Source: Anthoceros angustus
Lineage: Eukaryota > Plantae > Anthocerotophyta
Assembly (NCBI GenBank): GCA_010909165.1
Contig: VJWM01000019.1
Coordinates: 310,001 to 374,000, forward strand
Length of the DNA stretch: 64,000 bases
Direction: 5' to 3'
Under the pieces are notes generated by a model. That model searched no databases. It had not been told where the DNA came from and saw only the letters and a program-made list of their open reading frames with translations. Positions 2,640 through 53,589 of this stretch are shown here, piece by piece. The number at the start of each line of letters is the position of its first letter. Position 1 is the first letter of the stretch. The position numbers and the translations under genes are program-made.

Positions 2640-2930
2640 GGACGGGTCACATCAGCGTGCACCTGTGGTGGTGTTGCCGGATACCGCTCGGCCTCATTAT
2701 ACAAAGGCGACGGCTTGGTTTGCAGGAGAAGCACGCAAATCCCCATGGAACATCCGCACCTCTCATGGAGCCTGTGTGGCGAGACTTGAACTGTGCACAT
2801 CACATTGAATCCAGCTCATCGGATGCCATGACCATGTCTGCCGTGCTTGGTGACCACGGCCACAAACTACGACCGCTAGATGTGAGTTTCTTTTCCCACC
2901 GCGTAGGAGTGGATAATTGACGAGCAGCCT
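2640..2930 (+). pseudogene. Retroviral-type aspartic protease, frameshifted
   Basis: VVLPDTARP resembles the LDTGA catalytic motif (~2670). ATNYD...F....G..ID at ~2860-2920 resembles the protease C-terminal motif. Confidence 0.55.
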
Positions 2931-3259
2931 TCTATCGGCCCGACCGGCAGCAGGAGGACGTTTGCACATATTCCCTTGACTTGCAGCGGTGTGGCCACAG
3001 AGATCACGTTAGTGGTGTGCCATGCTAGCAAGGAGCCCGTCCTGCAATGTGAAGCTAGTCCAAGATGCTAACCAGCAAGATGCACAATCTTGAAGCGATG
3101 ACGCCATTCCGGTCCATGGATCTCACAGCTTGCAACATGCCCTTGCACAACCCGATCATCCAGGCGAGCTCACGCTGGCATGCAAGAGACAGTGCGGCAG
3201 TGATGCACTTGTTGGATTCAGTGTTAACCACCCACTCAAGATCGAGTCGGATCACAATG

Positions 3260-4170
3260 TGATTACATGGGCGCCATCGTTCGGACTGGTGGTAGAACTC
3301 TTTGGCGGGATCTGATCGGGCCGGAGGCTCTCTTGATGATCGATCGTCCATCAATCGTGTATTGTGACAATGATGTCACAAAGACGCCGTATCGCAGAGT
3401 TCAGCCGCAAGGGCTGCATGAGCGTTTTCCACAAAGAATCGCCTTGGAGGCCTATCACGGTGCTTTCACTGCTCTACCGCAGGGTGTCCGTTACATTCAA
3501 GAAGGCCACATTCGTGCCTTGGGAAATGTGGATATGGTGATTCGGCCGGGAATGCTGTGGGTTCTCCCTGGGCATGGAGCTGGTCTACAAGATGCACGCT
3601 GTGGTCGTCAGGATCTACATCAGTCCTCACATGGGCTCAAGAATACAACCCGCGGTGTGCTTACCTCCTTGAGAATACACCGCAATTTGAGCAGAGCACA
3701 TGTGCAACAGACATGGCGTGGTTCAAGATTATCGGGCCTCCCATCCTGTTAGATGCGGCCTGTGGGCGCTTTGCTCACCGAGGAATTATCGACCAACTTG
3801 GTCCCTCGATTCAGACCGGCTTTGCGTGGCACACACAGGGACCCGTCCTTGCAGCTTCAACTGGTGCTAGAGGATCATCACCAGCCCAAGCTTGTTACCG
3901 CCAGTGAGCGTGCGCCTTGGTTCAAAACCAACACACTGCCGCCTCGGCACTACGCCGTTAGCTTTCCAGTTCATTCGCTTACGGTGAGGGGCCTGCTGTT
4001 GAACACCAACACGCAGCAGTGGGAGGAACCCACTGTGCTGGAGCGGGAACGCATTATGGGCTTTCACCCATTCTCTGCCAGCCCTACGGTTACACCACTC
4101 GGTAAGCGTGCTCTAGGCAGAGCCATGGATGTTCACGCACTCACGTGGTTAGTGAGTCTGTGCTTGGCTT
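3260..4170 (+). pseudogene. C5 cytosine DNA methyltransferase domain (DNMT3/DRM-like fold) within Pol
   Basis: Motif I VVELFGGI (3289-3312). Motif IV VDMVI..E-C-C-G-F-S-L..GHGAGLQDAR (3528-3600). Motif VI YLLEN (3662-3676). Motif VIII-like LLDAA...AHR...TNL (3745-3800). EEPTVLERERIMGF (~4023-4064). Motif X LGRAMD (4113-4130). All are in canonical order. Confidence 0.85.
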
Positions 4171-4399
4171 TTCAGCTCCACGCTCGCTTGGCGGCGGTCA
4201 TGGTACCGAGCCTCGCCAAGATGTGTCCAAAGCGCTTCATCTCCCTTTTCCGGATATGCATACATGCCTTTCGGCCGGATGCGGTGGAGCAGTCCGTGGC
4301 GTCCTGTGCTTTTCTCGCCCCGGGAGAGCGATTAGATGATCCAGTCCCGCAAAGCCTAAGCTAAATGCCGAGACTTTCCGTGGCGCATGGGGATGGGCG

Positions 4400-5100
4400 G
4401 ATGGGCGTAAGACACGCATCCACACTCTCGCTCAAGTATCGGGCGCTTTGCCTTTACCATGAAGGACCTCAAGCGCAATGTGATCAGATTTCGGATCAAC
4501 GACGGTGAGCCCATCTACCGCGCTACAGTTGAGCAAGACGGAGTGGGAGATGGTCGATGCTAGGTGTCGTGAGCTTCTTGAAGCGAGGCTTATCCGGCTA
4601 TCCAAAGCGATTATGCCGCAAAGAATCGTCATGCCGCTAAAGAAGGATGCCAAGGGCCGTGGACGGAGAACGGATGTGGGGACTATCGTCCCATCAATGC
4701 CGCAGCAGATCGGTACCCAATGCCGACCGGAGGAGATATTTGACATTGGGCGCCTGCCTTCTTCTCTACTTTGGACCTTCGGTGGTTTTAACGATTCCGT
4801 TGCGTAAGAGGACATCAAGAAGACCGCTTCACGGGTCCCAGCGTGGAATGGCTGGTGATGCCATTCGGTTCAAGAACGCACCCGTCACTTTTCGGGTGAT
4901 GGATCCGTTTTACCGGATGTGCCAACTTGTTGTGCTATATCGACGTCTGGTTCACAAGATCGCTTTGAGGATCACCGGCACACTTAGAGGAGCTGTTCCG
5001 TAGGCTAAGGAAGGCAGAGCTCACATGTCACCCGTCCAAATGTGAATTTGGAATGAACACGTGGCATATTTAGGTCACAGAATCGTGCCTAACGGGTGAT
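4400..5100 (+). pseudogene. Reverse transcriptase, frameshifted
   Basis: Fragments LSKTEWEMVDARCRELL, VMPLKKD..G...CGDYRPIN, EEIFD, EDIKKTA, VMPFG.KNAP, CYID(D)V at 4933-4947 and LTCHPSKCEF. Confidence 0.9.
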
Positions 5101-5329
5101 GCCCCACTCACCAAGGTACAGCTATCCTGCAGTGAAGGAGCCCACCAACGTGTCGGCCTTGCGTGCCTTTCTTGGGTTATGCAACTATTAGGTTTACATT
5201 CGAATTTCAGCGGTGCGAAACCCTTGAATGACATGTTGAGGAAAGACGTGGAATGGGCATGGACTGAGTTGGCGCAGCAAGCTTTTGACATGTTGAAGGA
5301 GCAATTGACCAGGTCACCAGTCATGGCTA

Positions 5330-5710
5330 GGCCAGATTTTAGCAAGCCATTTGTATTACACACCGATTGGAGCTGTCTGGGACTTGGGCGGTGCTTGCAC
5401 AAGAGGATGAGCAGGGCAAGGAGCGCGTGATCGCTTATGCCTCGAGGAGTAATAACCGAGCGGAGGCCAATTACAGCAGCTATGAGGGGGAGTGCCTCGC
5501 AGCTGTTTGGGCCGTTTGCCACTTCCGCCCATATTTGTATGGTCAGCAGTTTAAGCTAGTGACTGATCATCAGCCATTGAAATGGCTGATGACTAACACA
5601 AAATTGAGTGGGAAGCTGGCTCGCTGGGCCATGATACTTCAAGATTATGACTTCCTTGTGGAGCACAGGCCAGGAGTGACACACCAAAATGCAGACATGC
5701 TATCTAGAAA
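5330..5710 (+). pseudogene. Ty3/gypsy RNase H
   Basis: FVLHTDWS followed by AVLAQ...ERVIAYASRSNNRAEANYSSYEGECLAAVWAVCHFRPYLYG...TDHQPLKWL...LARW...NADMLSR. Confidence 0.93.
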
Positions 5711-5989
5711 TCCGGACAGCAGCTGCAGTGATGTCACCGAGGCTAGGAGGACCATGAGGAGGAGATTGGTGCGATGTCATGTGGCGATTTGTTGCCATGA
5801 CCGCCTTGGATGATTTGTGTTTTCATTCTAATGCAAAGGACATTTGGGAAGATGTGAATGCTCTTGATTTTGCACTGGAGTATGGACGAGGCCCGACCCA
5901 CCGAAAAGAACAGTGCGTGCGTCGACGATTTGGCGTGATGGCTACATGATTCGCAGTCGGGCAATGGTGTCGAGCGCTTGGTGCCACCA

Positions 5990-6960
5990 CCGTGATAGGG
6001 GTGACACGATCGTCGTGCACGACATGGTCACTTTGGTGTGAAGCGGACTTACTGCTCACACCTCATTTTTATTGGTATGGGATGCACAACGTGCGAGCAG
6101 GTGGCTGTGAGCCTTGTGACCGAGTCAAGGCCTCCTTTACTATGCAAAGACCCGGTTCTCCACCCTCCGCCCATCATGGGCTTGTTCTTTCAGTCCTGCG
6201 ACCTCATTGGAGAATTGACTAGGGGCCGAGAGGCAATGTCTACATACTTGTCATGATGGAGCATTTCTCCAAATGGGTGGAGGTTGTGGCTCTATCGATA
6301 AGTCCTCAAGCACGCCCTGCATTTTTGCACACGTGCTTAGCCGCTTTGGTAGTGCGAGTGCTGATTTGCGGGCTCGAGTTTAGAGGGAATTTCGTGACCT
6401 TTTAGATGTTGCGCTTATCGATCACAAAGTGACTAGCAGGACCATCCTCGGTGATGGCTGAAAGGATGGTCCGGACCATCAAAAAGTGAGAAAGTTATGC
6501 TTGCAGCGTGGAAAGGAGGATTGGGACCTCATGCCGCCTACATCGCTATGGGCTACCGCATGAGTAAACATGCGCCTTGGCACACTTCTCCCTTACTTGC
6601 TTTTGGTCGTGAGCCGGTCACGAGTACAATAGCTAAGAAGATGCAGGAGGTGGTGCAGCATGATCCCGCCACATGGGCTCGAGTGATTGGGGAGCGGGCA
6701 CGGCTATTTCGGCAGTTATGCCAATGGCTATGGCCAACCTCAACATAGCTCAAGACCGGATTCCTTCATGTATACCGCGGTGGTCATTCAGCCCAAGTCA
6801 AGAAATTCAGTTGGGATTTCGATACTTGCAAAGGCAAACTGTGGACACCTTGACTGCTAGCAGCAGACATGTGCCGAGGGTGCGAGAAGTTAGGCCCAAT
6901 GGAGTGCTGATTTTGCGGGCTCGGATGGTAGGACTATTGCGACCATACCAAGAACTGCGC
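5990..6960 (+). pseudogene. Integrase (HHCC zinc finger plus core), frameshifted
   Basis: HGHFGVKRT...HFYWYGM...GCEPCDRVK; DLIGEL; YILVMMEHFSKWVEV; RMSKHA....SP..L.FGREP; C-terminal VREVRPNGVLIL. Confidence 0.85.
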
Positions 6961-7019
6961 CCGCCACTTACCTAATTTGGACCCCACGGTGATAACAACA
7001 GCTGGATTCCACCGCACTA

Positions 7020-7175
7020 CCCGTGCGTTTGTGGGAGGATGATGATGAGGAGCTTATGCTTCTCGTGACGGATGCAATGGGGTTTTCATTTGTTTTGCCT
7101 TACCCTCCGCCGCAGTCGCTCGAGCAACTCGTATTGTGCAAAGTGTGCTGGAAATGCTCGTGGATGACTGCTTGA
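7020..7175 (+). pseudogene. PHD finger at the Pol C-terminus
   Basis: Across indels it reads C..C....DDEELML(LC)DGCN.GFHLFCL.P....V.....YCAKC, matching the Cys4-His-Cys3 PHD pattern. Confidence 0.75.
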
Positions 7176-7374: not shown

Positions 7375-8228
7375 GGTAGCATAGGTAGAATTTTAGCACT
7401 TTTCTTTTTGTTTGGCACAGACGGGCCCTCTTTTCCCTTGCAGCTGAAGGCCGGGTGAAAACCAGGAAGAAGTGTGAGCAAGCTGCTGGTTTTGCGTCAT
7501 ACCGACAAATGATGAAGACGCACGACACCGACGTGAAACGATGCTAGGAACTAACTCTTAGAAGCTAGGGCTTAGCAAGTAGGTTTTGTTAGCTTAGTTT
7601 AATCAGTTGGTACTGATAATTACTAAAATGCCCTTAAACAGGAAAGTCGGGAAATAACCCGCAAAAATGGCCAAGCTTGGGCCAGGTCTCCCTCTCACAC
7701 AGCTCGCGTGGGAGAAAGCAGACATGATCACTCCAATCCAGCAGGATGCCGGCACCAAGAGTGTGGTGCCTACTGGTACTGCTGACGCAAGGTGGTTGCA
7801 AGGCGGTTGCGGAGCACAAGACCTGAAGGCGGCGGCTGTGGAAGGCAGTTGTCGAAGTCCCTAGGAGGAACGCTAGCTGAACACACGCAATTTTGTTGTT
7901 GTCGAATTTCTAGGCTGTAATGCAAAGACCTGTTGTGTGTATGCGCTGCTCAGCATTGTGGCAATGTGTGTAATGTGCAGTGTTCGCGGGACTTATCAGC
8001 TCTAGGCAGCCCGTGTAGGGCAGCCCTTTCAATTTCTGAGCAAGTGAGCATCGGCACATGTGGTGCATGTCCGGTAGCATAGGTAGAATTTTAGCACTTT
8101 TCTTTTTGTTTGGCACAGACGGCGGGCCCTCTTTTCCCTTGCGGTGAAGGCGGGTGAAAACCAGGAAGAAGTGTGAGCAAGCTGCTGGTTTTGCGCTGCG
8201 CTGACAGCTCATGAAGACGCACGACACC
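7375..8228 (+). repeat. Direct repeat of ~155 bp (7375-7529 and 8073-8228), possibly an LTR 3' end
   Basis: ggtagcataggtagaattttagcacttttctttttgtttggcacagac...gaagacgcacgacacc appears twice, and each copy ends near ...CACGACA. Confidence 0.8.
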
Positions 8229-10410
8229 ACTGCCTTCCTCCATGCAGGACCTCGTACTCCACTACCGACCTGTTCAATAGCTTCTGACTTTTAACATAGG
8301 CTGAAGAATTATCCACTATCGGGAGTGTGACATCAACATCTGAAATTTGAGGTGCCTTGGCAATAGCATGCTGCACAAGCCTCTCTAACTTGGTGTTGTG
8401 AACCATATTCAGCAACTTGCACTGTGATTGGAATCAAAAATGCCGATTAACTTCATCCACAAGAACATGTAGCAACCAATCTAAACATCTACCTGTAAGT
8501 CGCTTCTTAGTTAGAAGACACCTGAATTTCAATGCTAATGGTAGGCTTCTATGCTACTGTTGCAGTCTTGGCCACCATGTAGGACTTGTCGAGCTGTTTT
8601 AATCCACATGGGCATGTTTTGCCCCCATTGCCGCTTAAAATTTATTACAAATCCAGGCTCCGTTATTGCATATGAGGAGTAGAATACATCAAGCTCTTCC
8701 CCAACTTTCTCCATAGCACAACCCTGCTCATCCATATACATGATTTTACCAAGTGTGCTCATCATGTCCCTTCTCCTCGCTCTATTTTTCACCTTCTTTA
8801 TGAGTTGTCTCAACTAGGCACGCCGCACATGCCACAAACAAAAGAACACCAGCATGTTAGAGCCGAATACTTGCCATATAGCATTGATCTCGGCTTGGCA
8901 ATCGTCCACCAAGAAGGCGTTGTTGGGCTTCCAAGCCTGATTAGCCTTCACCATGACCTGCAATAAAGCCCCCAACCATACACTAATACTCTCATAAGTG
9001 CCTTTGTCAGAAATGATCCATGCCGCCGGCAGCCCGTTCATGTGGTCATCGAAGATCAACAGTGTGAACAACTGAAATTTCCACTTATTAGTCCCGGAAG
9101 TGGCATCCATAGAAACAAATCGAGTTATGGCCCCACCTCAACATAGATGAGTGGTGAAATGTTGTTTGAATACCTACTGCAAAGTGACACACATGTGTAG
9201 ACTCACAGCTGAAAGAAGAAAAGAAAATCTCATGCTTGTGTAAGTTCATCCAAATTCTCACGCTTTCCTCGTCACTGTGATGAAATTTCTATATCCTGCA
9301 ATCCAGCTCTACCTGCATATTTCTTATGTCTTTGGGCAATAAGAAATCATCATGGACCAAGTGGCATCCTGGGTTGTCCTTCTGTCTGCGATACATATCT
9401 GCCTCATGATCAGACATAATTTGGTAATTGGTCAGCTTACGTAAAAGCTTGTGCTTAACCCATTCCCACTTTGCCATGGATAAAACAGGAGCAAGAGAAA
9501 CATTTGCAGGGGCATCACTAGTCAACAAACCATAGGAGAAATCACCATTCATGCCTATATGGTGCCACTCGTGAATTCGTATCTCTGCATTTGCCGGCCA
9601 TTGCAATAATCTGCTAATGAAAAACTGGAACTTACATCCTCGTTTCCTACTTTGGCCAAACTTAATGCGTGACATCCTGCTACCTTCTCCCATTGTTGGA
9701 CGGTTCGTAACCTGAATGAAAGGCTCAAAACTTGTTAGGCGGAAATCTTGTGGTCCGTAAGGGCTATTTTGACATGCGTAGTCATCTTTCTTGCACAGTG
9801 CTTAGAGGGTGACCATTGTAAATCTTCTTTACTAAAATGCCCAACAGCCGGATGCAATACAGGCAAAGGGCATGAATCCGTGCTCACAAAGTCCTGCGCC
9901 ATTTTAGACATCAGTGAAATTGCCAGTAGCGGGAAGAATGCAGAGTTATGAGATAAACGGGCACTTCAAGGAAATCCAGCATCCTCCCGAATTCGTCGGC
10001 GGGCATGCATCTGTCCTTGGTGAGCCCTGAGTAGACATAATTACACAAATAGTATGAACATTTGGACGCCGTTGCCTACAGAGTTAGAAAATGTGGCTCT
10101 CACATGAACATGGGCAGACATTCACACAAAGGACACAATACACATGCAGGAGGACTCTAAGGCTCAAATAAGGCATTATCACCGCTCTCACCTTGCCCAT
10201 CTGACAATCACCCACCTCCTTCAGCGGCTGATCTTCCAGCTTCATTGCGGACGTTCATCTAGCTCCTTCAGCGCCCAGTCATCGTCCTTCATTGAGACGC
10301 ATTCCCTGTCCTGTGAACATGTTGTTTGTGCAAACTTGTGATTATAGGGCACGCTTCGCTTCGAGTTTGAAATGGAACGTAAGCCGGCGTTGAAAAGGAT
10401 TCCATGGCGG
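8227..10410 (-). mobile_element. Decayed Mutator-like (MULE) transposase
   Basis: DATSGTNKWKFQLFTLLIFD...GLPAAWII...FLVDDCQAEINAI..VF....FCLWHVRRA (8814-9110). NSSIEAYH supplies a third acidic residue (8535-8813). SRKRGCKFQF..HEWH is a DNA-binding-domain-like segment (9289-9693). The ORF has in-frame stops and is cut off just before the expected SWIM finger. The 5' limit is approximate and no TIRs were identified. Confidence 0.85.
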
Positions 10411-26221: not shown

Positions 26222-26748
26222 CCTGACAATCCGCGGACTCTGCGACTGCTCCCGCTGCGTCCGCTGATCGAGCACGCAAACCCTCACAGTCCCGCTCCCT
26301 TCCAGTCAAGTACCTTGAACGTGGTTTAGGGCAACCTTTGAATGAAAGCACACCTACATAGATGGATGCACCCTAAAGCCAGCTCCAGTTGAATCGGGCT
26401 TGACGCCTGAAAATACGGTGGATCTGCATCTTGCGCGGAATCTCTCGGCACCTGCGTCGGTTGCTTGTTCAGCGCTCGATCGGGATCTCGCCGGTCTGCG
26501 CTCAGCTGCCTTTAAAATCCTTGCTTCAGGTCGGCAGTCGTGAACATCCACCACTGCGGAGGATTTTCGACAGTGCGCGAGTTTTGCTGCCTGTTGTTGT
26601 GGAAGCCCATGTTCATTTGCAAACAAATTAGATCTCTTTTTCTTTGGTTCGCTTTGTTTCAATGATCCTGCTTTCATGGGTGTAGATGGTGACCGGCATG
26701 TCGTGTGCTCACAGATGCCGTTTCTTTGGTGGTGTCCAGGCCTGAGGG

Positions 26749-28463
26749 ATGGAGATTGACGGTGACGAGCCCCTGGAGTCGGTGGTTTCCGAGCTTCAGA
26801 GGAAGATGAACAAGAAGGACTCTTTTGCAGAAGCTGTCGCTGCCCTTACAGCGATTGTGCGGGACAAGTACCCTTCAGCTTCCACATTCGAAAGGATTAC
26901 TGTGGGTATCGATCGTTCCTGCATACCGGGATTCGTCTAGTTAGGGTTTGGAGAGTTTTTTGATTCTCGTCCTGCTGGGTGTGATACCTCGCTCTAACGT
27001 GGTAGAGGACTGCATTTCGGCTTGGTGTTCGTTTGTGGTTGGCCTGACTGAAGATGGAACCGCTGGCAGATATATTCAGCTGTATGCCGAGCCGGAAAAC
27101 TGCTCCAGACGCGGTACACTGCTCGAGGGTTGTGGGTTTTGGGACTGGAGCTGTTCAATGAAGCTCTTCAGGTGGTTGTCCGGCCTGACGAGAAGAAAGA
27201 GATCCGTGCGTTCATAACGAAGACCCAAAATTTCCTTGGGGAGGAAGAAACGAGGCAGGAGGTACCCGCCCAGCAGCGGGCCGGAACAAGTGTGTTGCAG
27301 AGTCCACTTTCCTTATTTCCGCTGAAATATTGTTGCCTGATTTAAAGTATTGCTCCTGCTGCGTCTTACAATGGTATGTTGATATTGCAGGTGGTGGGTT
27401 TCTTTTTAGTGGTCAGTTGACTTCGGAGTTGCCTCCTCCTCCCCGCTGGCTTATGGCTCAGAATGAATTTGTACGCCTTGTGAGTGAAAGAGCACAAAGT
27501 GAAGCTGATAGAGCAGGTGAAGGGGCAGAGGCAGGGTCAGGGGCAGGGGCAGGGGCTGGGGCAGAGCAGATTCCTTTGGACGAGCTCAGAGAGTTGCTTC
27601 ACAGAGTGGAAGATCACCTTGGAGACGAGCAGTTAGAAGCAGCCATTGCAGCCACGCTGCAGGTGAGTTTTTACTTGGAAGCTCAGTGATTCACAGTGAT
27701 CTGCTTGCTGCTGGCCAAACTGCGTGTGCTCCAACTTGTGATCATCCTGAGACAGCCATGAAAGTTTGCGGTGGAGCTCCTCTGCGTCTTGTTTTTCTAT
27801 CAGATTGTCCCGGCCCTGAGGATTAAAACCTTTTTTCTTTAGAGGCTACACAGCCATGAAAGTTAAAATTCAGAAATTTGAAATGAAGGGCCAGGTCACT
27901 TGTAGGAATTCTCTCTACTCTAAAATCTGACACATGGAAGCCCATGAAGCTCGTCTCACGCAGTTCCCTCGTCCGGTCGGTGTGCAGGAAGCAGGAAACG
28001 CACCCCGGGGGCCACCCCCAGCGTCAAAGGAGGAAGTAGCAAAGCTGCCCGTTGTCCCAGTCACAGAAGAACTCTTGAACCAGCTGGGAGACGGAACCGT
28101 GTGCGCAGTCTGCAGGGATCTGCTGGCAAGCGGGGACTCAATGCAGGAGATGCCCTGCAAGCATGTTTTCCATCCTCCCTGCCTCAAGCCGTGGCTGGTA
28201 AGGCTTGTCAGACCCTGCCAAGGACGTCCGGCCTGGCCTGCCGTCGTACTATTTTCTGACTGTCCCCGAAAGGAATTCCGTTCACCGTTCCTCCATCTGG
28301 ACTGTCTTTGCAGGACGAACACAACTCATGCCCCGTATGCAGATTCGAACTGCGGACTGACGACTACGAATACGAGACCAAGAAAGAGAGGGAGAGGGAA
28401 GAGGCGATAGAGCGGAAAGGGGTGGAAAACGCCCTCCGCGGAGGAGAGTTCATGTATATATAA
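26749..28463 (+). CDS. AIP2: RING-H2 E3 ligase, AIP2-like, copy 1
   Basis: ELQRKMNKK..F..AV...RDKYPSAS; LLQTRYTARGLW..GLELF; FLFSGQLT..PPPPRWL; RGPPPASKEEVAKLPV; CAVCRDLL...MPCKHVFHPPCLKPWL|DEHNSCPVCRFELRTDD; ends GGEFMYI*. Confidence 0.9.
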
Positions 28464-28944
28464 TTCATTTGTCACTCCACCTCTCACCCCATTGTACATA
28501 CACAGCGGGTTGGTGTGCTTCATGCCTCTTGCGGTTCTTCCTCCAGTGCAAGAACGGCAAGGAAGGAAGAAGGATTAAAGGAAGCCAGCACGCTGTCCAC
28601 GGCCAACGCCAAGCAAGGTGGCTCTCCTGCCGCGTGCCTCGTGCCATGCCCTATGGCTGATTCCCGTCTTATTAACTCCCTACGTGATTTGTATACGCAC
28701 ATTGGTGTCTGTTATGACCATGTTTCCTCTACCGGTAGCGACCATGTCGGCTCCTGACAGGTGCAGTACCTCATCAACGTGGTACAACCTGGTGAAGATG
28801 GCCCCGGCCCCCATTGGCCAACCTCAGGGTCCGGCTGTTACCAATGTCATACGATAATTTACAGCATAGTTATAATTATATTGTGAAGTTTACATCCATA
28901 ATTTGTTAATATTTTTAACTTTATTAAATTATATATATTATAAA

Positions 28945-29045: not shown

Positions 29046-29756
29046 TAATAATAAAAATTAGATAAGTTTTAAGCTAGGTTTTTCTCTCCTATGCATTTAT
29101 AGCTGATGCTCACTAGTTATAGAGTATGTGGTAAGCCAACTAGAATCTTGATTAAAAATATTCGAGTTGAACAAAGACTTATACCAATAGTACTCATCTT
29201 ACATCTTATAAGTTCATTAGAATTGTACAGCTAAGTGTCCTTTGGATGTATCCCTAAGGTGTCACCCATCTTCTTCTCCATAGCCCTACGAAGACCTTAT
29301 CATAAAAGCCCTATGGTAGCTGTGAGGGTCTGCATCCTTCGCCCTTCTGCCATGTTAGGCTCCTATATGCACTACCTATATACAAATGCACTAAAACTAC
29401 TAACGTCTAGAGGAAATGGATGCCTAAGGCACACCATGGTGCAAGTTGTTAAGTACCAAGTCCCACGATAGGGTAATTCCACCGAAGTGGACCATAATAG
29501 GGTTCCACCCCACAATGATCGTTCATTCTGGGGTTAACGACGGCCCTGAAAGTGTGGGTCTGACAACCCTACAGTGCGTGCTTACATGGTGCCGGCACAT
29601 CTCACCTGAGCGCGGGCGGCGGGGTACTCGCAAGTTTTACTGCCTGGTGTTGTGAAAGCTCATGGCCCATGCGCTAGACATTAGATCCCTTTCTCCTGTG
29701 GTTCACTTGATTGAGTACACAGATGCCATGTCTTTAGTGATGTCCAGGCCTGAGGG

Positions 29757-31508
29757 ATGGAGATTGATAGTGATGAGCCCCTGGAGTGTGTGGTTTCGGA
29801 GCTTCAGGGGAAGATGAACGAGGAGGACTCCTTTGCAGAAGCTGTCGCTGCCCTTACAGCGATTGTGCGGGACAAGTACCCTTCGGCTTCCACATTTGAA
29901 CAGATCACTGTGCGTATCGTTCGTTCCTGCATTCCGGGATTTGACTAGTTGGGGTTTGGAGAGACTTGTGTTTTTCATCATGCTACATGTGATACCTTTC
30001 TCCAACGGGGTAGTGGACGGCTTGGTGTTCTGTTTGTGGTTGGCCTGACTGAACGAAGGTGGGATTGTTGGCAGATATATTCTGCTGTATGCAAAGCCGC
30101 AGAACTGCTCCAGACGCAGTACAGTGCCCGAGGGTTGTGGGCTTTGGGACTAGAGCTGTTCAATGAAGCACTTCAGGTGGTTGTCCGGCCGGACGAGAAG
30201 AATGAGATCGGCGCGTTCATAACGAAGACCCAAGATTTCCTTGGAGAGGAAGAAAGCAGGCAGGATGTACCTGCGGAGGAGCAGGCCGGAACAAGTGTGT
30301 TGCACTGTGCACTATCCTTATTTCCGCTGAGTTTTTCTGATCTGGAGTATTTGTCGCTGCTGGGTCTCACACTACCTATGCTGGGTCTCACACTACCTAT
30401 GCCGATAGTGCAGGTAGGGTGTTTCTCTACAGAGGCCAGTTGACTCCTGAGGAGCTGCCAACTCCTCCCCCCTGGTTGTGGACTCACATTGCCGACCTCA
30501 GGGAGGCATTTCGGAGAGTGGAAGAGCAGACTGGACAGACTCACCTGGAAGCAGCCATCACAGGCGCATGGGAGGTGAGTTTCTTCTTGGGATCATAGTG
30601 ATGCAGAGTGATATGCTTGCTGCTGGTCAAGCTGAGGGAGCAGGTGAAGGGTCCGGGGCAGCGCAGATTGACGAGCTCAGAGTGTCATTGCAGAGAATGG
30701 AAGAGCAGCTTGGAGCAGCTATTGCAGCAACGTTACAGGTGAGTCCTTACTTGGGAATACTACGACTCACAGTGATGTGCTTGCTGCTGGTCAATATACA
30801 TGTGCACGATTATGTGACTTTCTTAGGACAGCGCTAAAGTCTGTGGTGGAGTGCCTCTGCGTCTGGTCTTTTATCAGATTGTCACAGCCCTGAGGACTAG
30901 AACTTTTTTCTTCACAGGCTACAAAGCCATGGAAGTTAAAATGCAGAAATGTGAAATGAATGGTCCGGTCACTTCGTTTGCTCATCGACTCCAGGGTCTC
31001 ACACACGAAAGACCGTCGCAGCTCGTCTAACGCAGTTCCCTCGTCCGGTGGATGTGCAGGAAGCAGATAACGCACCCCATGGACCACCTCCAGCTTCAGT
31101 GGAGGAGGTATCAAAGCTGCCTGTGGTTCCAGTCACAGAAGAACTCTTGAGACAGCTGGGAGACAGCCCCGTGTGCGCAGTCTGCAGGGAGGTGCTGGCG
31201 AGCGGGGACTCAATGCAGGAGATGCCCTGCAAGCATATTTTCCATCCTCCCTGCCTCAAGCTGTGGCTGGTGAGACTTGTCAGCCGATGCTCCATACTTT
31301 CGGCCTGCCCTGCCATGCTCTGCGTCGTACCCGTTCTCTGACTGTCCCAAACGAAATTACGTTCACCCTCTCCCCATCTGGACTGTCTGTGCAGGACCAA
31401 CACAACTCATGCCCCGTATGCAGATACGAACTGCGGACTGACGACCCTGAATACGAGACCAAGAAAGAGAGGGAGAGGCAAGAGGCGATAGACCGGAGTG
31501 GGGTGTGA
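29757..31508 (+). CDS. AIP2: RING-H2 E3 ligase, AIP2-like, copy 2 (diverged tandem paralog)
   Basis: Same exon series as copy 1 with an intact RING-H2 (CAVC..CKH.FH..C..W|..CPVC). An in-frame TGA at 31506-31508 removes the ENALRGGEFMYI tail. Confidence 0.8.
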
Positions 31509-33047
31509 AACGCTCTCCGCGGAGTAGAGTTCATGTACATATAATCCGTCAAGTCAGTCCAACGCCCACCACATTGTCCATACACTGCCGGTTGGTGTGC
31601 TTCGTGCTTCTTGCGGTTCTTCCTCCGCGCAAGAACGGCAGGGAGAGAAGAACTCCCAACGGAAGCTTGTAGATATTCTAGGGTTGCAAAGCAAAGCAAA
31701 GCAGGGCTCTCCAATCACGTGCCCCTGGCTGTACCCCTGAGATGCTTGCATTGGCCGTCTTACGCCCTACGTGACGGACATATGTCGTGACATGTTTCCC
31801 CTTGCTGGTAACGACCATGTAGGCCCCTGGCAGGTGCGGTAGTACCTCATAAGCGGGGTGCCAACGGGGTGGAGGTGGCCCCGGCCTCCATCGCCCCAAG
31901 CTCCCTACCCGTGAAAGGCGCCTCCAGCACGGTGGCCGCAAGGGTAACATAATGCGCCTGCCTTTACCCCCGGCCTGCGCCAGTACCGATGCCGACGCTC
32001 CCATCCTTGCTGTTGACTGCTTTTACAGCCACCGCTGGCCGGTCAGTTGGACACGAAGGAGATAGGCTCCAGCCTCCGCTTCAGGACACGCAACGGCCAA
32101 TGGACTGGTCGCTCCCTGGCCCTCGCCGAGGTCGGGCCTGGCCTGGCCTGGCCTGGCCTGCGATTCATCGGGCGCGTTTGAATCCATGTCGCCTGCCTCG
32201 GACTCCGATCATGCGACTATCTACCATGTTCTGACACCCTCCTCGGCTCATCCACACGCAAGCGGGCAGCAACCAGCAACCCTGGCCCGGCAGCGGCACC
32301 GGCGGAGGACAGGCTGCTGCGTCGAACCCTAATCTCCTGATCCAGGAGGGAGGGAGGGAGCGAGGGAGCGGGCCGCTGGAGCTCGGAGGACGCGCCACGC
32401 ATCTCGATGAGCCTGCAGGCGCGATTCGCCCGCCGCTGCAGCGAATGGGACCGACGCGTGAGGTCCACACGACCTCCCGGCTCCATGTATGGTGATGGAG
32501 GCCGTGAAGCAACGGAGCTGGCTTGGGCTTGGGGTTACAACGTGCATATGGAATGTATGTACATACATACATCGAGTGCCTCCGGGAAGCGTGGGCCCCA
32601 CCCTAAAATTCCGACATGCGCCGTCGCCGTTCACACTTGCTATCTGCCGGGAGGTGAGCCTACTGTATGTATGTATGCACAAGTGTGTGGCCACGTGATT
32701 CGCATCGCGGGCTCGCCTCGCCCCCGGATTGCATGCAGCATAAACCAGTGTCCATCATCGTTTCGTTAAACTTACGACGTTGGTACCGAAGTTGTCATCA
32801 TAGATCGGGTCTGTCCACCGCCCCCCCTTGATTTCTGCACCATCGTCCATGTTCAATCTGCGCATCCTCATATACCAACATGATTTCACATAACTTTACT
32901 GCATCCCAATTCGTAATAAGTTTTGTTACATCCCTCGTATAGCAGAAGCCATTCGGGCCCGGAGGTCGTGGCTCTTGGCTTCCACCCAAGTTGTGAAGGA
33001 TAATTTGTTTTTTTTGAGGGCGAGTGCGAGTGCCCTGTATGACCTAA

Positions 33048-42073: not shown

Positions 42074-43198
42074 ATGGCGTTCCATGGAGGAGGTGCAAGG
42101 GCGGTTGCAGCAGAAGGCGACAGGAATGGCCAGCACGACTTGGGAGGCTGCGATCCGCAGAACGATCCTGTGGTCGTTCATAAACCTTTAAAACCTGTAG
42201 TAATACGTGTCAAGAGGCAGCGGGAGGTGGCTCCCATTGAGGCTCTGTGGCTGGAGGTTCATGATAGGCCGCTCAAGAGGAGGTCGGGCTTAAAGAGGTT
42301 GAGTCTGGCAGAATCTGAAGCTGATGCGGGTGAAGAGAGGGGAACAAAACATCTGTTCTCCCTACTCGAGACTGTGACCTCGTCTGCCCTGAGGGATGCA
42401 GGTTTGTTGGAATCGCTCGAGGAGCTGAAGGTAGAGAAAAGGAACAGGCGGAAGGAGCAGCGTAAGCCGAACATCCGTCCTCGGTCACCTACTGGAGGAC
42501 GGAAAGCACAGCATGATGCACTGGCCAAGGCGGCCAGGTTCCAGCAGGTCTGGCACAGCAGACGAGGGGTTGCCCAGGGGGAAGAGGAGGAGGATGCGGC
42601 CGCGGAGCTTTTCCAGCTGTATGATGTTGTCCGGGTCGACGTGGAAGCAAAAGCAGCTGCCAAGGCCGTCAAACGCGAGAAAGCCAAGCAAGCAGCTGAA
42701 GGAGATTCGTGGTTGCGTAATTATCTACCGCTGTTACGGGAACACTTGCCAGCTGCGCTTTCCGAGGTGGACTCTACTAATGCTGCAGCACAAACCAAGT
42801 CAGCAGTGCAGGATGTAGGGCAGGCCGATGATGGAAGTGAGGCCGACGATTTTGTTTATGATGTTTACATTATGGAGGATGACGCAGACGAGGAAGACGA
42901 CTATGCTGCCTACCCCACTGTGGAAGTTCAGGAGGAGGAGTTCTTTGTCTTCGATTCGGTCCATTCCGACCATGACAGTGAGGACTCGAATGCTGAAGAC
43001 AACCCTAAGAATGACTATCCTGAAGAGGAGGAGGATCCTTGTGACCGCAGCAGCAACAGTGAGGACGGTTCTGACGATCGGTGGAAAGGATCTGAAGAGG
43101 AATATGACACTGTTGCATACGACGAAGAGGAAGACATGAGGTACGGAAGTCAAGCATATGGTGACACAGAGGAAGTGAGGTGGGCACGTCGAAGATGA
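42074..43198 (+). CDS. IWR1: IWR1/SLC7A6OS-family RNA polymerase import and assembly factor (RDM4/DMS4-like), intronless
   Basis: KPVVIRVKRQRE.APIEALWLEV..RPLKR; DDFVYDVY; DSEDSNAEDNPKNDYPEEE; acidic tail. Confidence 0.88.
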   Translation: MAFHGGGARAVAAEGDRNGQHDLGGCDPQNDPVVVHKPLKPVVIRVKRQREVAPIEALWLEVHDRPLKRRSGLKRLSLAESEADAGEERGTKHLFSLLETVTSSALRDAGLLESLEELKVEKRNRRKEQRKPNIRPRSPTGGRKAQHDALAKAARFQQVWHSRRGVAQGEEEEDAAAELFQLYDVVRVDVEAKAAAKAVKREKAKQAAEGDSWLRNYLPLLREHLPAALSEVDSTNAAAQTKSAVQDVGQADDGSEADDFVYDVYIMEDDADEEDDYAAYPTVEVQEEEFFVFDSVHSDHDSEDSNAEDNPKNDYPEEEEDPCDRSSNSEDGSDDRWKGSEEEYDTVAYDEEEDMRYGSQAYGDTEEVRWARRR

Positions 43199-44561: not shown

Positions 44562-44829
44562 CGCCGCCGAGCTGTCGCGCAGCAACGCAGATTCTGGTGC
44601 TCGCACTCGCAGCTGGTCCTGCTACTGGCGGTTTGGATCAGGGGGCCATTTCGGGCAAGTACAGAGAAGATACAGGCCCGCGATTAGCGGGGCTTATATG
44701 AGTTAATTTTTGCACCGAGGGTTGGTTTACATTTCCACCAGGGTTAGAGCGACGGCGCCTCGTGCTCGATGAACGAGTCGTGTGATTCGTGAGGCGAAGG
44801 GGAAGGCAGGCAGGACTGAAGCCGCAACA

Positions 44830-47283
44830 ATGGTGAAGCGCAGCAAGAGTGAGCTGCAAGATTGGTGTGAGTTGGACGGTGGGGCGCCAGATGGTGACGT
44901 TCTGATGTGAGTGGGATTTGCAGAGAGCAAGAGCAAGCGCATGCCCTTGCGGAAAAAGTACAAGATTCTGAAGAAGGTGAAGGAGCACCATAAGAAGAAG
45001 GCCAAGGAGGCCAAGAAGATTGGCACCAAAAAGGCCAAGGTCGAGAAGGATCCCGGAATCCCGAATGCCTGGCCTTTCAGGGAGCAGGAGCTGCAGGCTC
45101 TTGAGGCCCGCCGGGCTCGTGCGGTGGAGGAATTGGAGCGGAAAAAAGAGGAGAAGAAGGAGCGGGTGAGTGCAAGGAGGGTTTCGCGGTTGTCAGAGCG
45201 TGAGTGAGTGAGTTTGTCGGGGTTGTGATTCGGGTGGGTTTTGTGGCTTGGCACCTGCAGGCCAGAAAGAGGAAAGCCGGTGAGTTTGATGGAGAGCAAG
45301 ACCTTGAGAAGCTTGCCTCTGATGCGGCACGAAAGGACTCGGAGTTTGAGAAGAGAAGGAAGACGGAGGTTGCTGCTGGGACTTCCGCCGCGAAAGGTTG
45401 GATGGTTAGGGTTTTGGGTTTTGGGGCAGTGATCGTGGTGATTTGGCAGGTGAAGTGATTCGGATTGTTGTGCTGGGTGGATAGGTGCAGATGGTTCTCG
45501 CAGGGCCTTTTACAAGGAGTTCATGAAAGTTGTGGAGGCTTCCGACGTCGTCATACAGGTTTTAGATGCCCGTGATCCTCTTGGCAGCCGCTGCAAGGAT
45601 GTTGAACGGCTGGTTCACAAATCTGGGCCTGCCAAGCGGGTGGTGCTACTGCTGAACAAGATTGGTAAGTGGCAATGCCTTCATTCTTGGTTTGGATCTG
45701 AGGTGCACGCCATGTATCTCACTGGGATTTTGTTATGTGACCGTGGGGTGCACTGGTTGTGATTTTGTCAGATCTTGTCCCCAAAGAGGTGGCAGAGAAG
45801 TGGCTCAAGTATCTGAGGGAAGAATTGCCAACTGTGGCTTTCAAGTGCAGTACTCAGCAGCAAAAAACGAATCTTGGACAGAAGGACCGGCGCAGCAAGA
45901 AGCCGATAACAGAAGTGCCTGACTTGCTGCAATCAAATGATTCTTTAGGTGCAGAAACTTTGCTGCAGCTTCTGAAGAACTATGCAAGAAACCAGCAGGT
46001 GAGAACTGTTTGTTTTCCTGGGCCCTAATTCTTTTGCTAACCTCTGTTCTGTAGTTACCTGAAGTTTCCTTGGCTATGCAGCTGAAGACATCCATCACTG
46101 TGGGAATAGTGGGCTTCCCCAACGTTGGGAAGAGCAGTCTCATCAACAGTCTAAAACGAACACGAGCAGTGAGTGTTGGTGCCACACCTGGGGTGACCAA
46201 GGTGACTCAGGAGGTGCATCTGGATAAGCATGTGAAGCTGCTTGACAGTCCTGGAATTGTATTCGCCTCAGCTGGCGAGAACAATGCAGCAGTTGCTCTG
46301 CGCAATTGCATCAAGATAGAGAAACTGGAGGATCCTATCGCCCCAGGTACTACACCTGTTTCTGCATGTTGAGCAAGATTCCAGCAATTCTTGTCTGGCT
46401 GCTCACCGTGGCTTGAATTCTGCAGTGAAGGAAATCCTAAGACTCTGTCCAGCTGAAAGGCTGATGTCTATCTATAAGCTCCAAAGGTTCAGCACTGTAG
46501 ACGAGTTTTTGCAACTTGTAGCTGCAGCCCGAGGGAAGTTAAAAAAAGGAGGTGTAGCTGACACTGTTGCAGCTGCACGAATGGTTCTACAAGACTGGAA
46601 CACAGGTTGGACTAGTGTAATGTTGTAGGGGTGTTACGTGACGAGATGGAGTTTACTAGTTGTAACTACTAACCTTGAGAACCCTCGTTTCTTTCAGGAA
46701 AGATTCCTTATTTCACCATGCCTCCAAAACGGGACTCCGGTGACCAATTGGAGTCTGCCATTGTGTCTGAGTGGGGTAAAGAATTTAACGTAGATGAAGT
46801 CTTCGAGCGGGAGCGCTCAGCAGTTATATCAGGGCTGCCATCACTTGGAAGCACTCTTCATGTTGAGATGCCTGGTGGTGACCCCTTTGCTATGGATATG
46901 GATGTGGACATGCAGGAGGTTAGTGTCTCCTACTCTCCCACGTTCGAGTATTTTCTGCAAGTTTTGTCTCTGACTTTTCTTGATGAATTTCACAGGATGA
47001 TGACGATGATGAGAACGAAAGTGATGAGGATTCTGAAGACGATGCTACCCAACCTGCGGAAAAGGAAGAGGAAGAACCTGAACCTCTCTCTATGGACACC
47101 AGCGAAGCTGTAGCTGTATTGTCCAGGGGTAGTGCCTTCCTTAGACAGAATGACAAGCTGTACGATGTGGATGGCATACTAAATCCACATGCGAAGCGGG
47201 CTGAGAAGAAGCTGCGGAAGAAAGCAGCAAAGGTCAGCCGGCCTAGCGTAGGGGATAAGGAGAATGACTCCATGCAGACGTGA
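44830..47283 (+). CDS. NSN1: Nucleostemin/GNL3-like circularly permuted GTPase, copy 1
   Basis: MVKRSK|[25 protein letters not shown]; [11 protein letters not shown]; [20 protein letters not shown]; LLLNKI|DL; [19 protein letters not shown]; LLDSPG. Confidence 0.95.
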
Positions 47284-47685
47284 TCTATTTGCCAGGACAG
47301 ATGAGGTTGCTGGTAGTGGATTTATCTGAGCTTTTCGATTGGCCAGGTATTCCGCTTCTTGCAGCACGAACGGATTTCCCACTATTGTTGTATTTCTGAA
47401 GTAGAAATTTTTCTCACTGACAGCCCCACATGGGGTCGCAGAGATTTGATTAAAAACATCAAGAAGGCTGGTGCCATTTGTCGTCCTTCCATTCCACAGT
47501 TCAGCCGCGTTCACAGATATTACCGAGGCCTCTTGCGGAATTCGTTAACGCCAAAACTTTATTCACGTATTTCTCACCTGCGTACCTAGAATACCTAGTT
47601 ACTATTACTTTTACATAAATGAGCCCCATAATTGGGGGCGAGTGGTGAGGCGAAGGGGAAGGCAGGCAGGACTGAAGCCGCAACA

Positions 47686-50139
47686 ATGGTGAAGCGCAGC
47701 AAGAGTGAGCTGCAAGATTGGTGTGAGTTGGACGGTGGGGCGCCAGATGGTGACGTTCTGATGTGAGTGGGATTTGCAGAGAGCAAGAGCAAGCGCATGC
47801 CCTTGCGGAAAAAGTACAAGATTCTGAAGAAGGTGAAGGAGCACCATAAGAAGAAGGCCAAGGAGGCCAAGAAGATTGGCACCAAAAAGGCCAAGGTCGA
47901 GAAGGATCCCGGAATCCCGAATGCCTGGCCTTTCAGGGAGCAGGAGCTGCAGGCTCTTGAGGCCCGCCGGGCTCGTGCGGTGGAGGAATTGGAGCGGAAA
48001 AAAGAGGAGAAGAAGGAGCGGGTGAGTGCAAGGAGGGTTTCGCGGTTGTCAGAGCGTGAGTGAGTGAGTTTGTCGGGGTTGTGATTCGGGTGGGTTTTGT
48101 GGCTTGGCACCTGCAGGCCAGAAAGAGGAAAGCCGGTGAGTTTGATGGAGAGCAAGACCTTGAGAAGCTTGCCTCTGATGCGGCACGAAAGGACTCGGAG
48201 TTTGAGAAGAGAAGGAAGACGGAGGTTGCTGCTGGGACTTCCGCCGCGAAAGGTTGGATGGTTAGGGTTTTGGGTTTTGGGGCAGTGATCGTGGTGATTT
48301 GGCAGGTGAAGTGATTCGGATTGTTGTGCTGGGTGGATAGGTGCAGATGGTTCTCGCAGGGCCTTTTACAAGGAGTTCATGAAAGTTGTGGAGGCTTCCG
48401 ACGTCGTCATACAGGTTTTAGATGCCCGTGATCCTCTTGGCAGCCGCTGCAAGGATGTTGAACGGCTGGTTCACAAATCTGGGCCTGCCAAGCGGGTGGT
48501 GCTACTGCTGAACAAGATTGGTAAGTGGCAATGCCTTCATTCTTGGTTTGGATCTGAGGTGCACGCCATGTATCTCACTGGGATTTTGTTATGTGACCGT
48601 GGGGTGCACTGGTTGTGATTTTGTCAGATCTTGTCCCCAAAGAGGTGGCAGAGAAGTGGCTCAAGTATCTGAGGGAAGAATTGCCAACTGTGGCTTTCAA
48701 GTGCAGTACTCAGCAGCAAAAAACGAATCTTGGACAGAAGGACCGGCGCAGCAAGAAGCCGATAACAGAAGTGCCTGACTTGCTGCAATCAAATGATTCT
48801 TTAGGTGCAGAAACTTTGCTGCAGCTTCTGAAGAACTATGCAAGAAACCAGCAGGTGAGAACTGTTTGTTTTCCTGGGCCCTAATTCTTTTGCTAACCTC
48901 TGTTCTGTAGTTACCTGAAGTTTCCTTGGCTATGCAGCTGAAGACATCCATCACTGTGGGAATAGTGGGCTTCCCCAACGTTGGGAAGAGCAGTCTCATC
49001 AACAGTCTAAAACGAACACGAGCAGTGAGTGTTGGTGCCACACCTGGGGTGACCAAGGTGACTCAGGAGGTGCATCTGGATAAGCATGTGAAGCTGCTTG
49101 ACAGTCCTGGAATTGTATTCGCCTCAGCTGGCGAGAACAATGCAGCAGTTGCTCTGCGCAATTGCATCAAGATAGAGAAACTGGAGGATCCTATCGCCCC
49201 AGGTACTACACCTGTTTCTGCATGTTGAGCAAGATTCCAGCAATTCTTGTCTGGCTGCTCACCGTGGCTTGAATTCTGCAGTGAAGGAAATCCTAAGACT
49301 CTGTCCAGCTGAAAGGCTGATGTCTATCTATAAGCTCCAAAGGTTCAGCACTGTAGACGAGTTTTTGCAACTTGTAGCTGCAGCCCGAGGGAAGTTAAAA
49401 AAAGGAGGTGTAGCTGACACTGTTGCAGCTGCACGAATGGTTCTACAAGACTGGAACACAGGTTGGACTAGTGTAATGTTGTAGGGGTGTTACGTGACGA
49501 GATGGAGTTTACTAGTTGTAACTACTAACCTTGAGAACCCTCGTTTCTTTCAGGAAAGATTCCTTATTTCACCATGCCTCCAAAACGGGACTCCGGTGAC
49601 CAATTGGAGTCTGCCATTGTGTCTGAGTGGGGTAAAGAATTTAACGTAGATGAAGTCTTCGAGCGGGAGCGCTCAGCAGTTATATCAGGGCTGCCATCAC
49701 TTGGAAGCACTCTTCATGTTGAGATGCCTGGTGGTGACCCCTTTGCTATGGATATGGATGTGGACATGCAGGAGGTTAGTGTCTCCTACTCTCCCACGTT
49801 CGAGTATTTTCTGCAAGTTTTGTCTCTGACTTTTCTTGATGAATTTCACAGGATGATGACGATGATGAGAACGAAAGTGATGAGGATTCTGAAGACGATG
49901 CTACCCAACCTGCGGAAAAGGAAGAGGAAGAACCTGAACCTCTCTCTATGGACACCAGCGAAGCTGTAGCTGTATTGTCCAGGGGTAGTGCCTTCCTTAG
50001 ACAGAATGACAAGCTGTACGATGTGGATGGCATACTAAATCCACATGCGAAGCGGGCTGAGAAGAAGCTGCGGAAGAAAGCAGCAAAGGTCAGCCGGCCT
50101 AGCGTAGGGGATAAGGAGAATGACTCCATGCAGACGTGA
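47686..50139 (+). CDS. NSN1: Nucleostemin/GNL3-like GTPase, copy 2 (apparently identical)
   Basis: Same exons at +2856. Only 41 bp of native upstream sequence is retained. It may be an assembly duplicate. Confidence 0.75.
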
Positions 50140-52468: not shown

Positions 52469-53589
52469 TGCGCTTGTCGGGCCAGGACCAGCTCCGTCGT
52501 CTCCGCAACACGACCCCGCCTCCTCCCCAATTGCATTGCCCGCGGGCCAGCGACCGGGCCGCAGATCAGAGCTCGAGCAAGGGCGGATTATCAGCGCGGC
52601 GGGAGGGACACGCGGGCACTACATGGCAGCACCAGCGGCATCAGAAGCATCAGGGGAGCATAACATCGGGCACGGGAACGGACTGCGCAGCCCAGGTCAC
52701 AACAGGCGGCCGAGCCCCGGCCCCGGCCCCGCCCGGGCCCCGGCCCGGCCAAGGCAGCAGGCATGGCTTGGAATATTCTGGGGAGATAAGGATGTGCAAA
52801 AAATGGCGACAGATGCCCTACACCGATGCGCATATGCGGCGAATGGACTTGGGAAATTCCGGTCGGGAGATCTGGCAGTGTAGCAGGTGCAGTGAACTCG
52901 GAGGCTCGGGCCGAGCCTGCAGCCTCGGGTCACTGCCGCCGCCCCATTCGTCGCCTGCTCAGATTCCCTTCCTCTGGCCCACTTCTGGTGACTGCCAGAA
53001 TATGCGACACGATTCCAGGATGGAATCCCTGGGTCCCGGTATATCCAACTCCTCTCCTCTGCCGATTCCAGCCCAACGGGCTGCTGTGCTGTCGACTGTC
53101 CAGCAAGTTCCCGTTCTGTGTGGTTGTATATCCGTCCCTGAGTGCCTCCAGGATCTGGGGTCGGCACTGCCACTGGCCAACTCCAGCCTCTTTCATAAAA
53201 TTAGCAGGACGCTGGCACGGCGGCGTCGCTGACCGCCTGGAGAGAAGAGTGTGTGCACAGTAGATTGTAGGGTGCATTCATGGGCACAGCACCCGGACGG
53301 TGAAGGAATTCACGGACGCATCATGCACAGACTAGTAACAAAAAGGGCTGAGGAAAAATGGACCAGGCAACATTCCCAGCATCTACCTTCGAAGATACAG
53401 TATGTACTCTGCTGGTGCTGCTGCTCCTGCCGGTCGGGGTGGTCCAGCACCTAAGCCGTACCTTTGGTATATCCCCCATGCCAGAATAGTTCCTCCCTTG
53501 GATGCCTGTACCTCGAGGGGGAACAAGAGGAGGATGATGCCACCAGATGCTATTGCTCCATCTCCTCGAGTTAGTCTTCATCATAGCCA

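Follow-up and report, generated by a model that had tools for sequence, protein, structure and literature searches.

DNA methylation is normally a weapon of the host against retrotransposons, and retrotransposons that carry their own cytosine methyltransferase invert this usual picture of host defence. Does the 64-kb stretch of contig VJWM01000019.1 presented above (the whole stretch of 64,000 nucleotides, hereafter the window) hold such an element, and in what state? An earlier note, made from the letters alone, had proposed a long terminal repeat (LTR) retrotransposon with a C5 cytosine DNA methyltransferase (C5-MTase) between its protease and its reverse transcriptase (RT). Our analysis indicates, with a probability that we put at roughly 0.92, that a dead Ty3/gypsy retrotransposon of the Gypsy-DNMT3 kind has left its decayed methyltransferase domain at window positions 3289-4181. 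The relic of this DNMT3-type enzyme lies on the forward strand, as do all the parts of the element described below, and is spread over three reading frames with 7 frame changes in 893 nt.

To detect the relic we used a profile hidden Markov model built from eight full-length domains of retrotransposon-borne DNA methyltransferases (retro-DNMTs) found among phmmer matches (alignment A1). The profile was aligned to the DNA by a frameshift-aware Viterbi procedure, which proceeds in codon steps and charges a 7-bit penalty for each step of 1, 2, 4 or 5 nt. Profile columns 8-334 aligned to nt 3289-4181 at 169 bits with the 7 frame changes. The 128 controls run through the same procedure (40 base-shuffled and 40 triplet-shuffled sequences, with 48 other segments of the window on both strands) had means of 15-17 bits, a standard deviation of ~2 and a maximum of 22.8 bits, and the reverse strand scored 15.7 bits. 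The broken gene was read through with X at the breaks, with no mended or consensus sequence.

Searches with unbroken pieces of open reading frame (ORF) gave the same location. In hmmsearch with the eight-domain profile, exactly three of the 3092 ORF pieces in the 64 kb matched, and they were collinear and correctly spaced: 3354-3536 (profile 32-89, E = 5e-8), 3653-3781 (profile 141-188, E = 0.03) and 3813-4175 (profile 203-332, E = 1e-22). When the 203-aa ORF piece at 3753-4364 was compared exhaustively with 1.84 billion representatives by phmmer, 52 proteins matched at E ≤ 1e-3; the strongest match (E = 3e-15) was 49% identical. In the longer of these proteins a PF00145 (DNA_methylase) domain directly precedes the matched part, and RT, RNase H, integrase and PHD domains are also present. 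Pfam, searched at E ≤ 1, recognized none of the four ORF pieces covering 3130-4364. Against the PDB, phmmer with the 203-aa piece found no methyltransferase and one chance match, to a chlorophyll-binding protein (E = 0.34), and a word-indexed protein search with the same piece, whose length filter excludes polyproteins, found nothing. The ORF track is silent on the methyltransferase, as had been remarked from the letters, because the single ORF pieces have no Pfam or PDB methyltransferase match. No second DNMT copy was found within the 64-kb window by tblastn.

The motifs of the enzyme were located by reading 2800-4600 in three frames, a motif's frame being its start position modulo 3. Motif I, the S-adenosylmethionine-binding loop VVELFGGI, lies at 3289-3312 (frame 1) and aligns to the family 'elfgGl' at the place of the F-x-G-x-G motif of C5-MTases; a TGA stop at 3313-3315 follows at the first frame junction of the relic. 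Frame 0 then carries IVYCDND (3354-3374), AFTALPQGV (3462-3488) and VDMVI (3528-3542), after which motif IV, GRECCGFS, stands in frame 1 at 3544-3567, with the catalytic Cys codon at 3553-3555 and Glu before the Cys instead of Pro. GHGAGLQDAR (3570-3599, frame 0) precedes motif VI, AYLLENT (3659-3679, frame 2; LLENT at 3665-3679), in which the Glu is retained. The motif VIII region at 3743-3806 (LLDAA..AHR..TNL) is broken by frameshifts into a first part, ILLDAACGRFAHR (3743-3781, frame 2), and a second part, TNLVP (3792-3806, frame 0); it corresponds to the DNMT3-like 'DA..AHR.R.FW.NL' block and aligns with DNMT3A through the family profile. By the same route, the block 4041-4130, which comprises ERERIMGF (4041-4064, frame 0) and motif X, LGRAMD (4113-4130, frame 0), aligns with DNMT3A 'ERVFGFP...LLGRSWSV'. 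The Glu of the motif VI ENV and motifs VIII, IX and X are thus present in order in the window copy, and every motif that the earlier note had named in canonical order across the indels was recovered at its position.

The catalytic residues are features of the family. Both the catalytic Cys and the ENV Glu of motif VI were kept in 47 of 47 family sequences with data. The residue preceding the Cys was Glu in 32 of the 47, Pro in 13, Asp in one and Ser in one. The nearest kin of the window copy share its Glu-Cys, and the element of the alga Klebsormidium nitens has the canonical Pro-Cys. The Glu-Cys loop, which had been read from the letters as a departure from the usual Pro-Cys, is therefore a family trait and not damage in the window copy.

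To place the domain among known enzymes, we compared the family profile with all PDB sequences. DNMT3A ranked first (E = 3.5e-20), followed by DNMT3C and DNMT3B, with plant DRM2 (3e-10), M.HhaI (4e-9) and DNMT2 at lower ranks, and the three aligned stretches of the profile spanned the whole DNMT3A catalytic domain in canonical order. PF00145 was matched individually by seven of the eight profile members (best E = 1.1e-10), and a protein-atlas search returned PF00145 clusters for 99 of the 100 neighbours listed. An AlphaFold2 model of one family member, made with a 40-sequence alignment (A2), had a mean pLDDT (predicted confidence) of 95.9. In a Foldseek search of the PDB with this model, the best 50 matches were all DNMT3A, DNMT3B or DNMT3C, with E down to 3e-19 and TM-scores (template modelling scores) of 0.70 relative to the length of the query and 0.81 relative to that of the target. 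Judged by sequence and predicted fold, the domain is a DNMT3-type C5-MTase whose motif order is not permuted as in DRM.

The animal DNMT3A, DNMT3B and DNMT3C, with the host DNMT3 of mosses, are accordingly the best sequence and fold match, sharing the canonical order of motifs I-X as well as the two blocks 'DA..AHR.R.FW.NL' and 'ER..GFP...LLGR'. They differ from the retro-DNMT family in that identity is ~20-24%, the retro-DNMT is embedded in a retrotransposon polyprotein, and most of its members have Glu for Pro. PDB and Pfam matches of the retro-DNMT covered the methyltransferase domain alone, with PWWP and ADD not specifically sought. The plant enzymes DRM1 and DRM2 are DNMT3-related C5-MTases and formed the second-best PDB group (E = 3e-10), but their motifs are circularly permuted, whereas the retro-DNMT order runs canonically from I through X.

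The relic lies within the remains of a single element. On one strand follow gag (996-1649), a protease trace, the DNMT (3289-4181), RT and RNase H (4603-5813), integrase (6017-6924) and a PHD-finger relic, and the hallmarks of Ty3/gypsy are present in the RT - RNase H - integrase order and a gag with a CCHC knuckle. The gag, open in an ORF at 1008-1649, was scored by frameshift-aware alignment to a K. nitens-type gag profile and reached 40.8 bits without any frameshift (null maximum 17.7). It matched the gag of the K. nitens protein P0090 (tblastn E = 8.5e-9) and, with 38% identity, that of contig L007 from Logan run SRR33208241 (E = 7e-43); the Pfam zf-CCHC match was weak (E = 0.004). Between gag and the protease trace lies a tandem duplication of ~150 nt (1678-1968; blastn self-match of 1678-1822 with 1827-1968, 94% identity). 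The aspartyl-protease relic at 2640-2945 is probable and weak: Pfam gave no protease match there, a profile of three sequences gave null level, and one of five sequences recovered 2816-2873 at a marginal 22.3 bits against a null maximum of 16.3. Weak collinear tblastn high-scoring pairs also link it to the protease ORF of L007 (VVVLPDTAR/VVLVDSGSE, CLVTTATNYD/CLLTEATTYD and AFYRPD).

Downstream of the DNMT, RT and RNase H align to their profile over 4603-5729 at 343 bits, along a path that crosses 16 frame changes and 2 stops. The RT is severely disrupted, with internal deletions, and the RNase H still reads open in ORF 5367-5813 (Pfam RT_RNaseH E = 7.6e-34, RT_RNaseH_2 E = 1.1e-13). The broken integrase, with an H2C2 zinc domain and a core, gave 131 bits over 6017-6574 with 11 frame changes, and tblastn with the protein P0067 spanned 6016-6924 (E = 1.4e-10). 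C-terminal of the integrase, the PHD-finger relic at 7012-7155 has 3 frame changes and scored 31.3 bits, where the null maximum was 17.7; several of its Cys residues are lost, and relatives carry a Pfam PHD after the integrase. No LTR pair was visible in the 64-kb window, where no repeat links 1-996 to sequence beyond 7156, and a 5' LTR could be situated before position 1 of the window. Of the proposal of an LTR retrotransposon with a C5-MTase between protease and RT, the position of the DNMT upstream of the RT in a gypsy Pol was borne out; no LTR pair accompanied it, and the protease was a weak trace. Just downstream of the PHD relic there is a 158-nt direct repeat pair (7375-7529 and 8073-8228, 90.5% identity, 699 nt apart) without a match upstream of gag, and a MULE transposase relic on the reverse strand (8814-9693, Pfam MULE E = 1.8e-10) adjoins the 3' side of the element.

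Could the copy be intact or recently active, with most of its frame breaks being indel errors of the assembly? The gag (996-1538) and the RNase H part (5367-5813) are indeed open without a frameshift. Against this, ~37 frame changes fall across Pol (7 in the DNMT, 16 in RT and RNase H, 11 in the integrase and 3 in the PHD finger), with two stops in RT and RNase H plus the TGA at 3313 in the DNMT, that is ~37 frame changes and at least two stops in ~3.6 kb of Pol. The RT has internal deletions, the PHD finger has lost Cys residues, the search of the window yielded no LTR pair, identity to the nearest relative is just 38-43%, and the terminal branch in the DNMT tree described below is long, at 1.3-1.6 changes per site. 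We therefore consider an intact or recently active copy improbable. With its 7 frame changes and the TGA at 3313, the window copy has no open reading frame for the enzyme; it is an old fossil, dead, for which no function can be claimed.

Elements with the same domain order were found in other sources. An ENA metagenome contig (L002) carries protease, DNA_methylase, RVT_1, RNase H, integrase and PHD in this order, and three contigs from run SRR33208241 (L003, L006, L007) show the shared order as well. Among the latter, L007 (L007:4241-9679) has gag and protease, followed by a near-intact DNMT that scored 367 bits with 2 frame changes and 1 stop, and by RT. The SRR33208241 plant holds at least three mutually diverged A-type copies (45-64% identity), which are the three closest DNMT relatives of the window. 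In Closterium sp. NIES-53 (L009:7245-17499), gag and a Glu-Cys DNMT with one stop are followed ~6 kb further by an intact RT and RNase H, and this ~6-kb gap suggests a nested insertion; Closterium sp. Naga37s-1 (P0017) provides a second zygnematophyte A-type copy. In K. nitens, a single protein (KFL_013780020) has zf-CCHC at 297, an Asp protease at 598-691 and DNA_methylase from 833, and the K. nitens P0090 belongs to the retro-DNMT family (E = 6.5e-43) and matches pieces of the window DNMT at E = 8e-4 and 3.5e-8. The DNMT segment between protease and RT is thus shared by other copies (L002, L003/L006/L007, L009 and K. nitens) and is not peculiar to this locus.

A maximum-likelihood tree of the DNMT domain (33 rows, careful search, unrooted) split ten A-type, or streptophyte, rows from 23 B-type rows with support of 98/88. 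The ten comprise the window, two SRR33208241 copies, Closterium, K. nitens with two kin, P0034, L002 and Marchantia; in the 23 B-type rows the DNMT lies between RNase H and integrase. Within the A-type side, the window and the two SRR33208241 copies formed one group (95/87), Closterium joined the K. nitens clade (96/90), and the L002 element was sister to the Marchantia fragment (98/97). The window DNMT is 38-43% identical to its nearest kin; with K. nitens the figure is 32%. The gag and DNMT matches, together with the A-type clade at 98/88 in this unrooted tree, argue from sequence that the window element and the K. nitens element share descent. The window element is part of a streptophyte lineage that includes the published K. 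nitens family and is also present in Closterium, a liverwort and a hornwort-like lineage.

These relatives bear on a second explanation, by which a fragment of a host DNMT3 gene was moved beside a gypsy element by nested insertions or rearrangement, making the arrangement a one-off juxtaposition. Pfam alone detects no methylase in the window region, and the boundaries of so broken an element are uncertain, both of which would suit such an origin. However, the gag-protease-DNMT-RT order recurs at independent loci of at least four other sources, K. nitens has gag, protease and DNMT within one protein, the window falls inside the retroelement clade of the DNMT tree, and the Glu-Cys loop is common to the window and those elements. 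The recurring domain order and the gag matches to K. nitens and L007 therefore exclude a one-off juxtaposition, and we give this explanation very little credence. That the motif resemblance is a chance product of reading three frames is hardly credible at all, since, although repeated frame switching is needed and no single ORF piece has a Pfam match, the score far exceeds the maximum of controls given equal frame freedom, and the matches at 1e-22 and 3e-15 were reached without frame switching.

To identify the host lineage, we used a gene that lies 35 kb away from the DNMT-bearing element, at window 42074-43198 on the forward strand. It is a 374-aa ORF without introns and encodes an Iwr1 domain. 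Its nearest protein-atlas clusters were RNA-directed DNA methylation 4 / Iwr1, with Streptophyta as the commonest phylum, and it is nearest to the plant RDM4/IWR1 proteins, a factor of RNA-directed DNA methylation. Identities were 44% to Ceratodon, 40% to Sphagnum, 40% to Marchantia, 39% to Ginkgo, 36% to Riccia, ~35% to angiosperms and 29% to Chlorokybus. The RDM4-like gene of the SRR33208241 plant was 49% identical, on a contig with 65-70% DNA identity to the window around the gene. In a tree rooted on Chlorokybus, the two proteins formed a clade (support 98) apart from mosses, liverworts and vascular plants. The suggestion that DNMT-bearing gypsy elements extend to embryophytes is upheld by this gene, which falls among embryophytes as a separate lineage, and independently by the liverwort Marchantia polymorpha. 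There, the annotated spliced gene model of OAE24016.1 (AXG93_4079s1050; LVLJ01002688.1) contains, free of frameshifts, an open C-terminal half of a retro-DNMT (L008:8148-8657, 205 bits). No RT or integrase was found within 14 kb of this half-domain, which may be a relic or a domesticated fragment.

Several points weigh against reading the locus as the fossil of a land-plant Gypsy-DNMT3 element. The link of the window copy to C5-MTases runs through the family profile and not through a direct PF00145 match. The ends of the element are undefined, as the protease is barely detectable and no LTRs were found. There is also a small probability that part of the damage is an artefact of the assembly. 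Finally, the hornwort identity of the host was reached by elimination in one gene tree, that of the RDM4/IWR1-like gene.

The window also contains other repeats. Direct repeats of 100% identity occur 4149 nt apart in 52355-60543 (for example, 52355-52654 equals 56504-56803), and each 4149-nt unit ends in a 12-nt tandem array (56244-56394 and 60393-60543), which points either to an assembly duplication or to a tandem duplication of very recent date. At 26710-28464 and 29718-31545 lies an older one, in tandem, of ~3 kb and 85-89% identity. A 300-nt pair at 44784-45083 and 47640-47939 (99% identity, spacing 2856 nt) could represent the LTRs of a small element.

Elements of this kind have been described before. 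KnitGypsy-Dnmt3, with non-rearranged Dnmt3 domains in the Pol of a K. nitens gypsy element, was reported to be under purifying selection (de Mendoza et al. 2018, PMC5890265). The same study, which describes DIRS-like repeats for that element, also reports independent DNMT captures in Symbiodinium, the enzymes of which methylate CG de novo, and its species table covers land plants with angiosperms, Selaginella and Physcomitrella and names no hornwort (PMC5890265, in the parts consulted). A 2026 preprint from the same group cites just 'streptophytes (Gypsy-DNMT3)' for this kind (bioRxiv 10.64898/2026.05.21.726589). As far as the consulted parts of these two sources go, K. nitens alone is reported for such elements in the green lineage, and a full-text literature search found no paper linking DNMT-bearing retrotransposons with hornworts, Anthoceros, bryophytes or Haematococcus. 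The kind has therefore already been published for a streptophyte alga, and the window holds a land-plant member of it.

The window element resembles KnitGypsy-Dnmt3 in being a Ty3/gypsy with a non-rearranged DNMT3-type domain in Pol, in its homologous gag and DNMT, in the order zf-CCHC, protease, DNMT, and in lying on the same side of the 98/88 split. It differs in that the two DNMTs are 32% identical, the loop is Pro-Cys in K. nitens but Glu-Cys in the window and its nearest kin, and the host is a charophyte alga in one case and a land plant in the other. A PHD follows the integrase in the window element; the K. nitens protein compared is partial. SymbioDIRS-Dnmt3 and SymbioLINE-Dnmt of Symbiodinium and the EpiLTRs of Cymbomonas and Euglena are likewise retrotransposons with a captured cytosine methyltransferase, but they differ by class (DIRS, LINE) or by the origin of the DNMT (sister to DNMT4), which is appended at another position. 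The Symbiodinium and EpiLTR elements are independent acquisitions according to the authors (bioRxiv 10.64898/2026.05.21.726589). Chromoviruses share with the present family a chromatin-reader module fused to the integrase C-terminus; there, however, the module is a chromodomain, whereas here it is a PHD finger, combined with a writer of DNA methylation.

What is new is a land-plant host for Gypsy-DNMT3 with younger copies in a related plant, as well as the relatives in Closterium, the open half-domain in Marchantia and a second architecture in Haematococcus. In this second architecture, the same DNMT3-type domain is placed between RNase H and integrase (RT - RNase H - DNMT - integrase - PHD), and the polyproteins measure 1100-2750 aa. 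The arrangement is frequent among metagenome sequences (L001:10001-16657, P0041; P0054; P0058-P0089) and occurs in the chlorophyte Haematococcus lacustris (P0071, QJQ45_013313) and, as a complete ORF, in the transcriptome entry GHUV01001039. Our literature search found no paper describing this arrangement. Directly upstream of P0041 on its JGI metagenome contig lies a called gene of 3466 aa (L001:1-9871) with no Pfam match on record.

How such an element might work can be proposed from its intact relatives, in which a single Gag-Pol polyprotein comprises gag, protease, a DNMT3-type C5-MTase, RT-RNase H, integrase and a C-terminal PHD finger. This polyprotein would deliver a DNMT3-type de novo methyltransferase alongside RT and integrase. 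The predicted fold, the motifs and the invariant catalytic residues support the assignment as a DNMT3-type enzyme, and if an intact domain behaves like the retrotransposon DNMTs assayed by de Mendoza et al. (2018), it would add methyl groups to cytosines de novo. Its most likely targets would be the new cDNA of the element itself or the insertion site, and the PHD finger after the integrase may read histone tails and so guide integration or methylation. The pre-methylation of its own cDNA that had been suggested for the element cannot apply to the window copy, because this copy is dead.

For the family as a whole, the range now extends to Closterium, a hornwort-like land plant and one of its relatives, with an open fragment in Marchantia and a rearranged form in Haematococcus. 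Two features stand out, namely the predominant Glu-Cys loop and the pairing of a methylation writer with a PHD finger in two domain orders across green plants. The members form a natural series for asking whether Glu-Cys enzymes are active, what they methylate and whether the PHD finger steers integration. A broader picture, which we offer tentatively and regard as possible rather than probable, is that gypsy elements with a DNMT3-type writer (mostly Glu-Cys) and a PHD reader are an old green-plant lineage, with the protease-DNMT-RT order running through the streptophytes, from Klebsormidium and Closterium into liverworts and hornworts, and the RNase H-DNMT-integrase order in chlorophytes; some hornwort copies may then be active and add de novo methylation to the methylome of their host.

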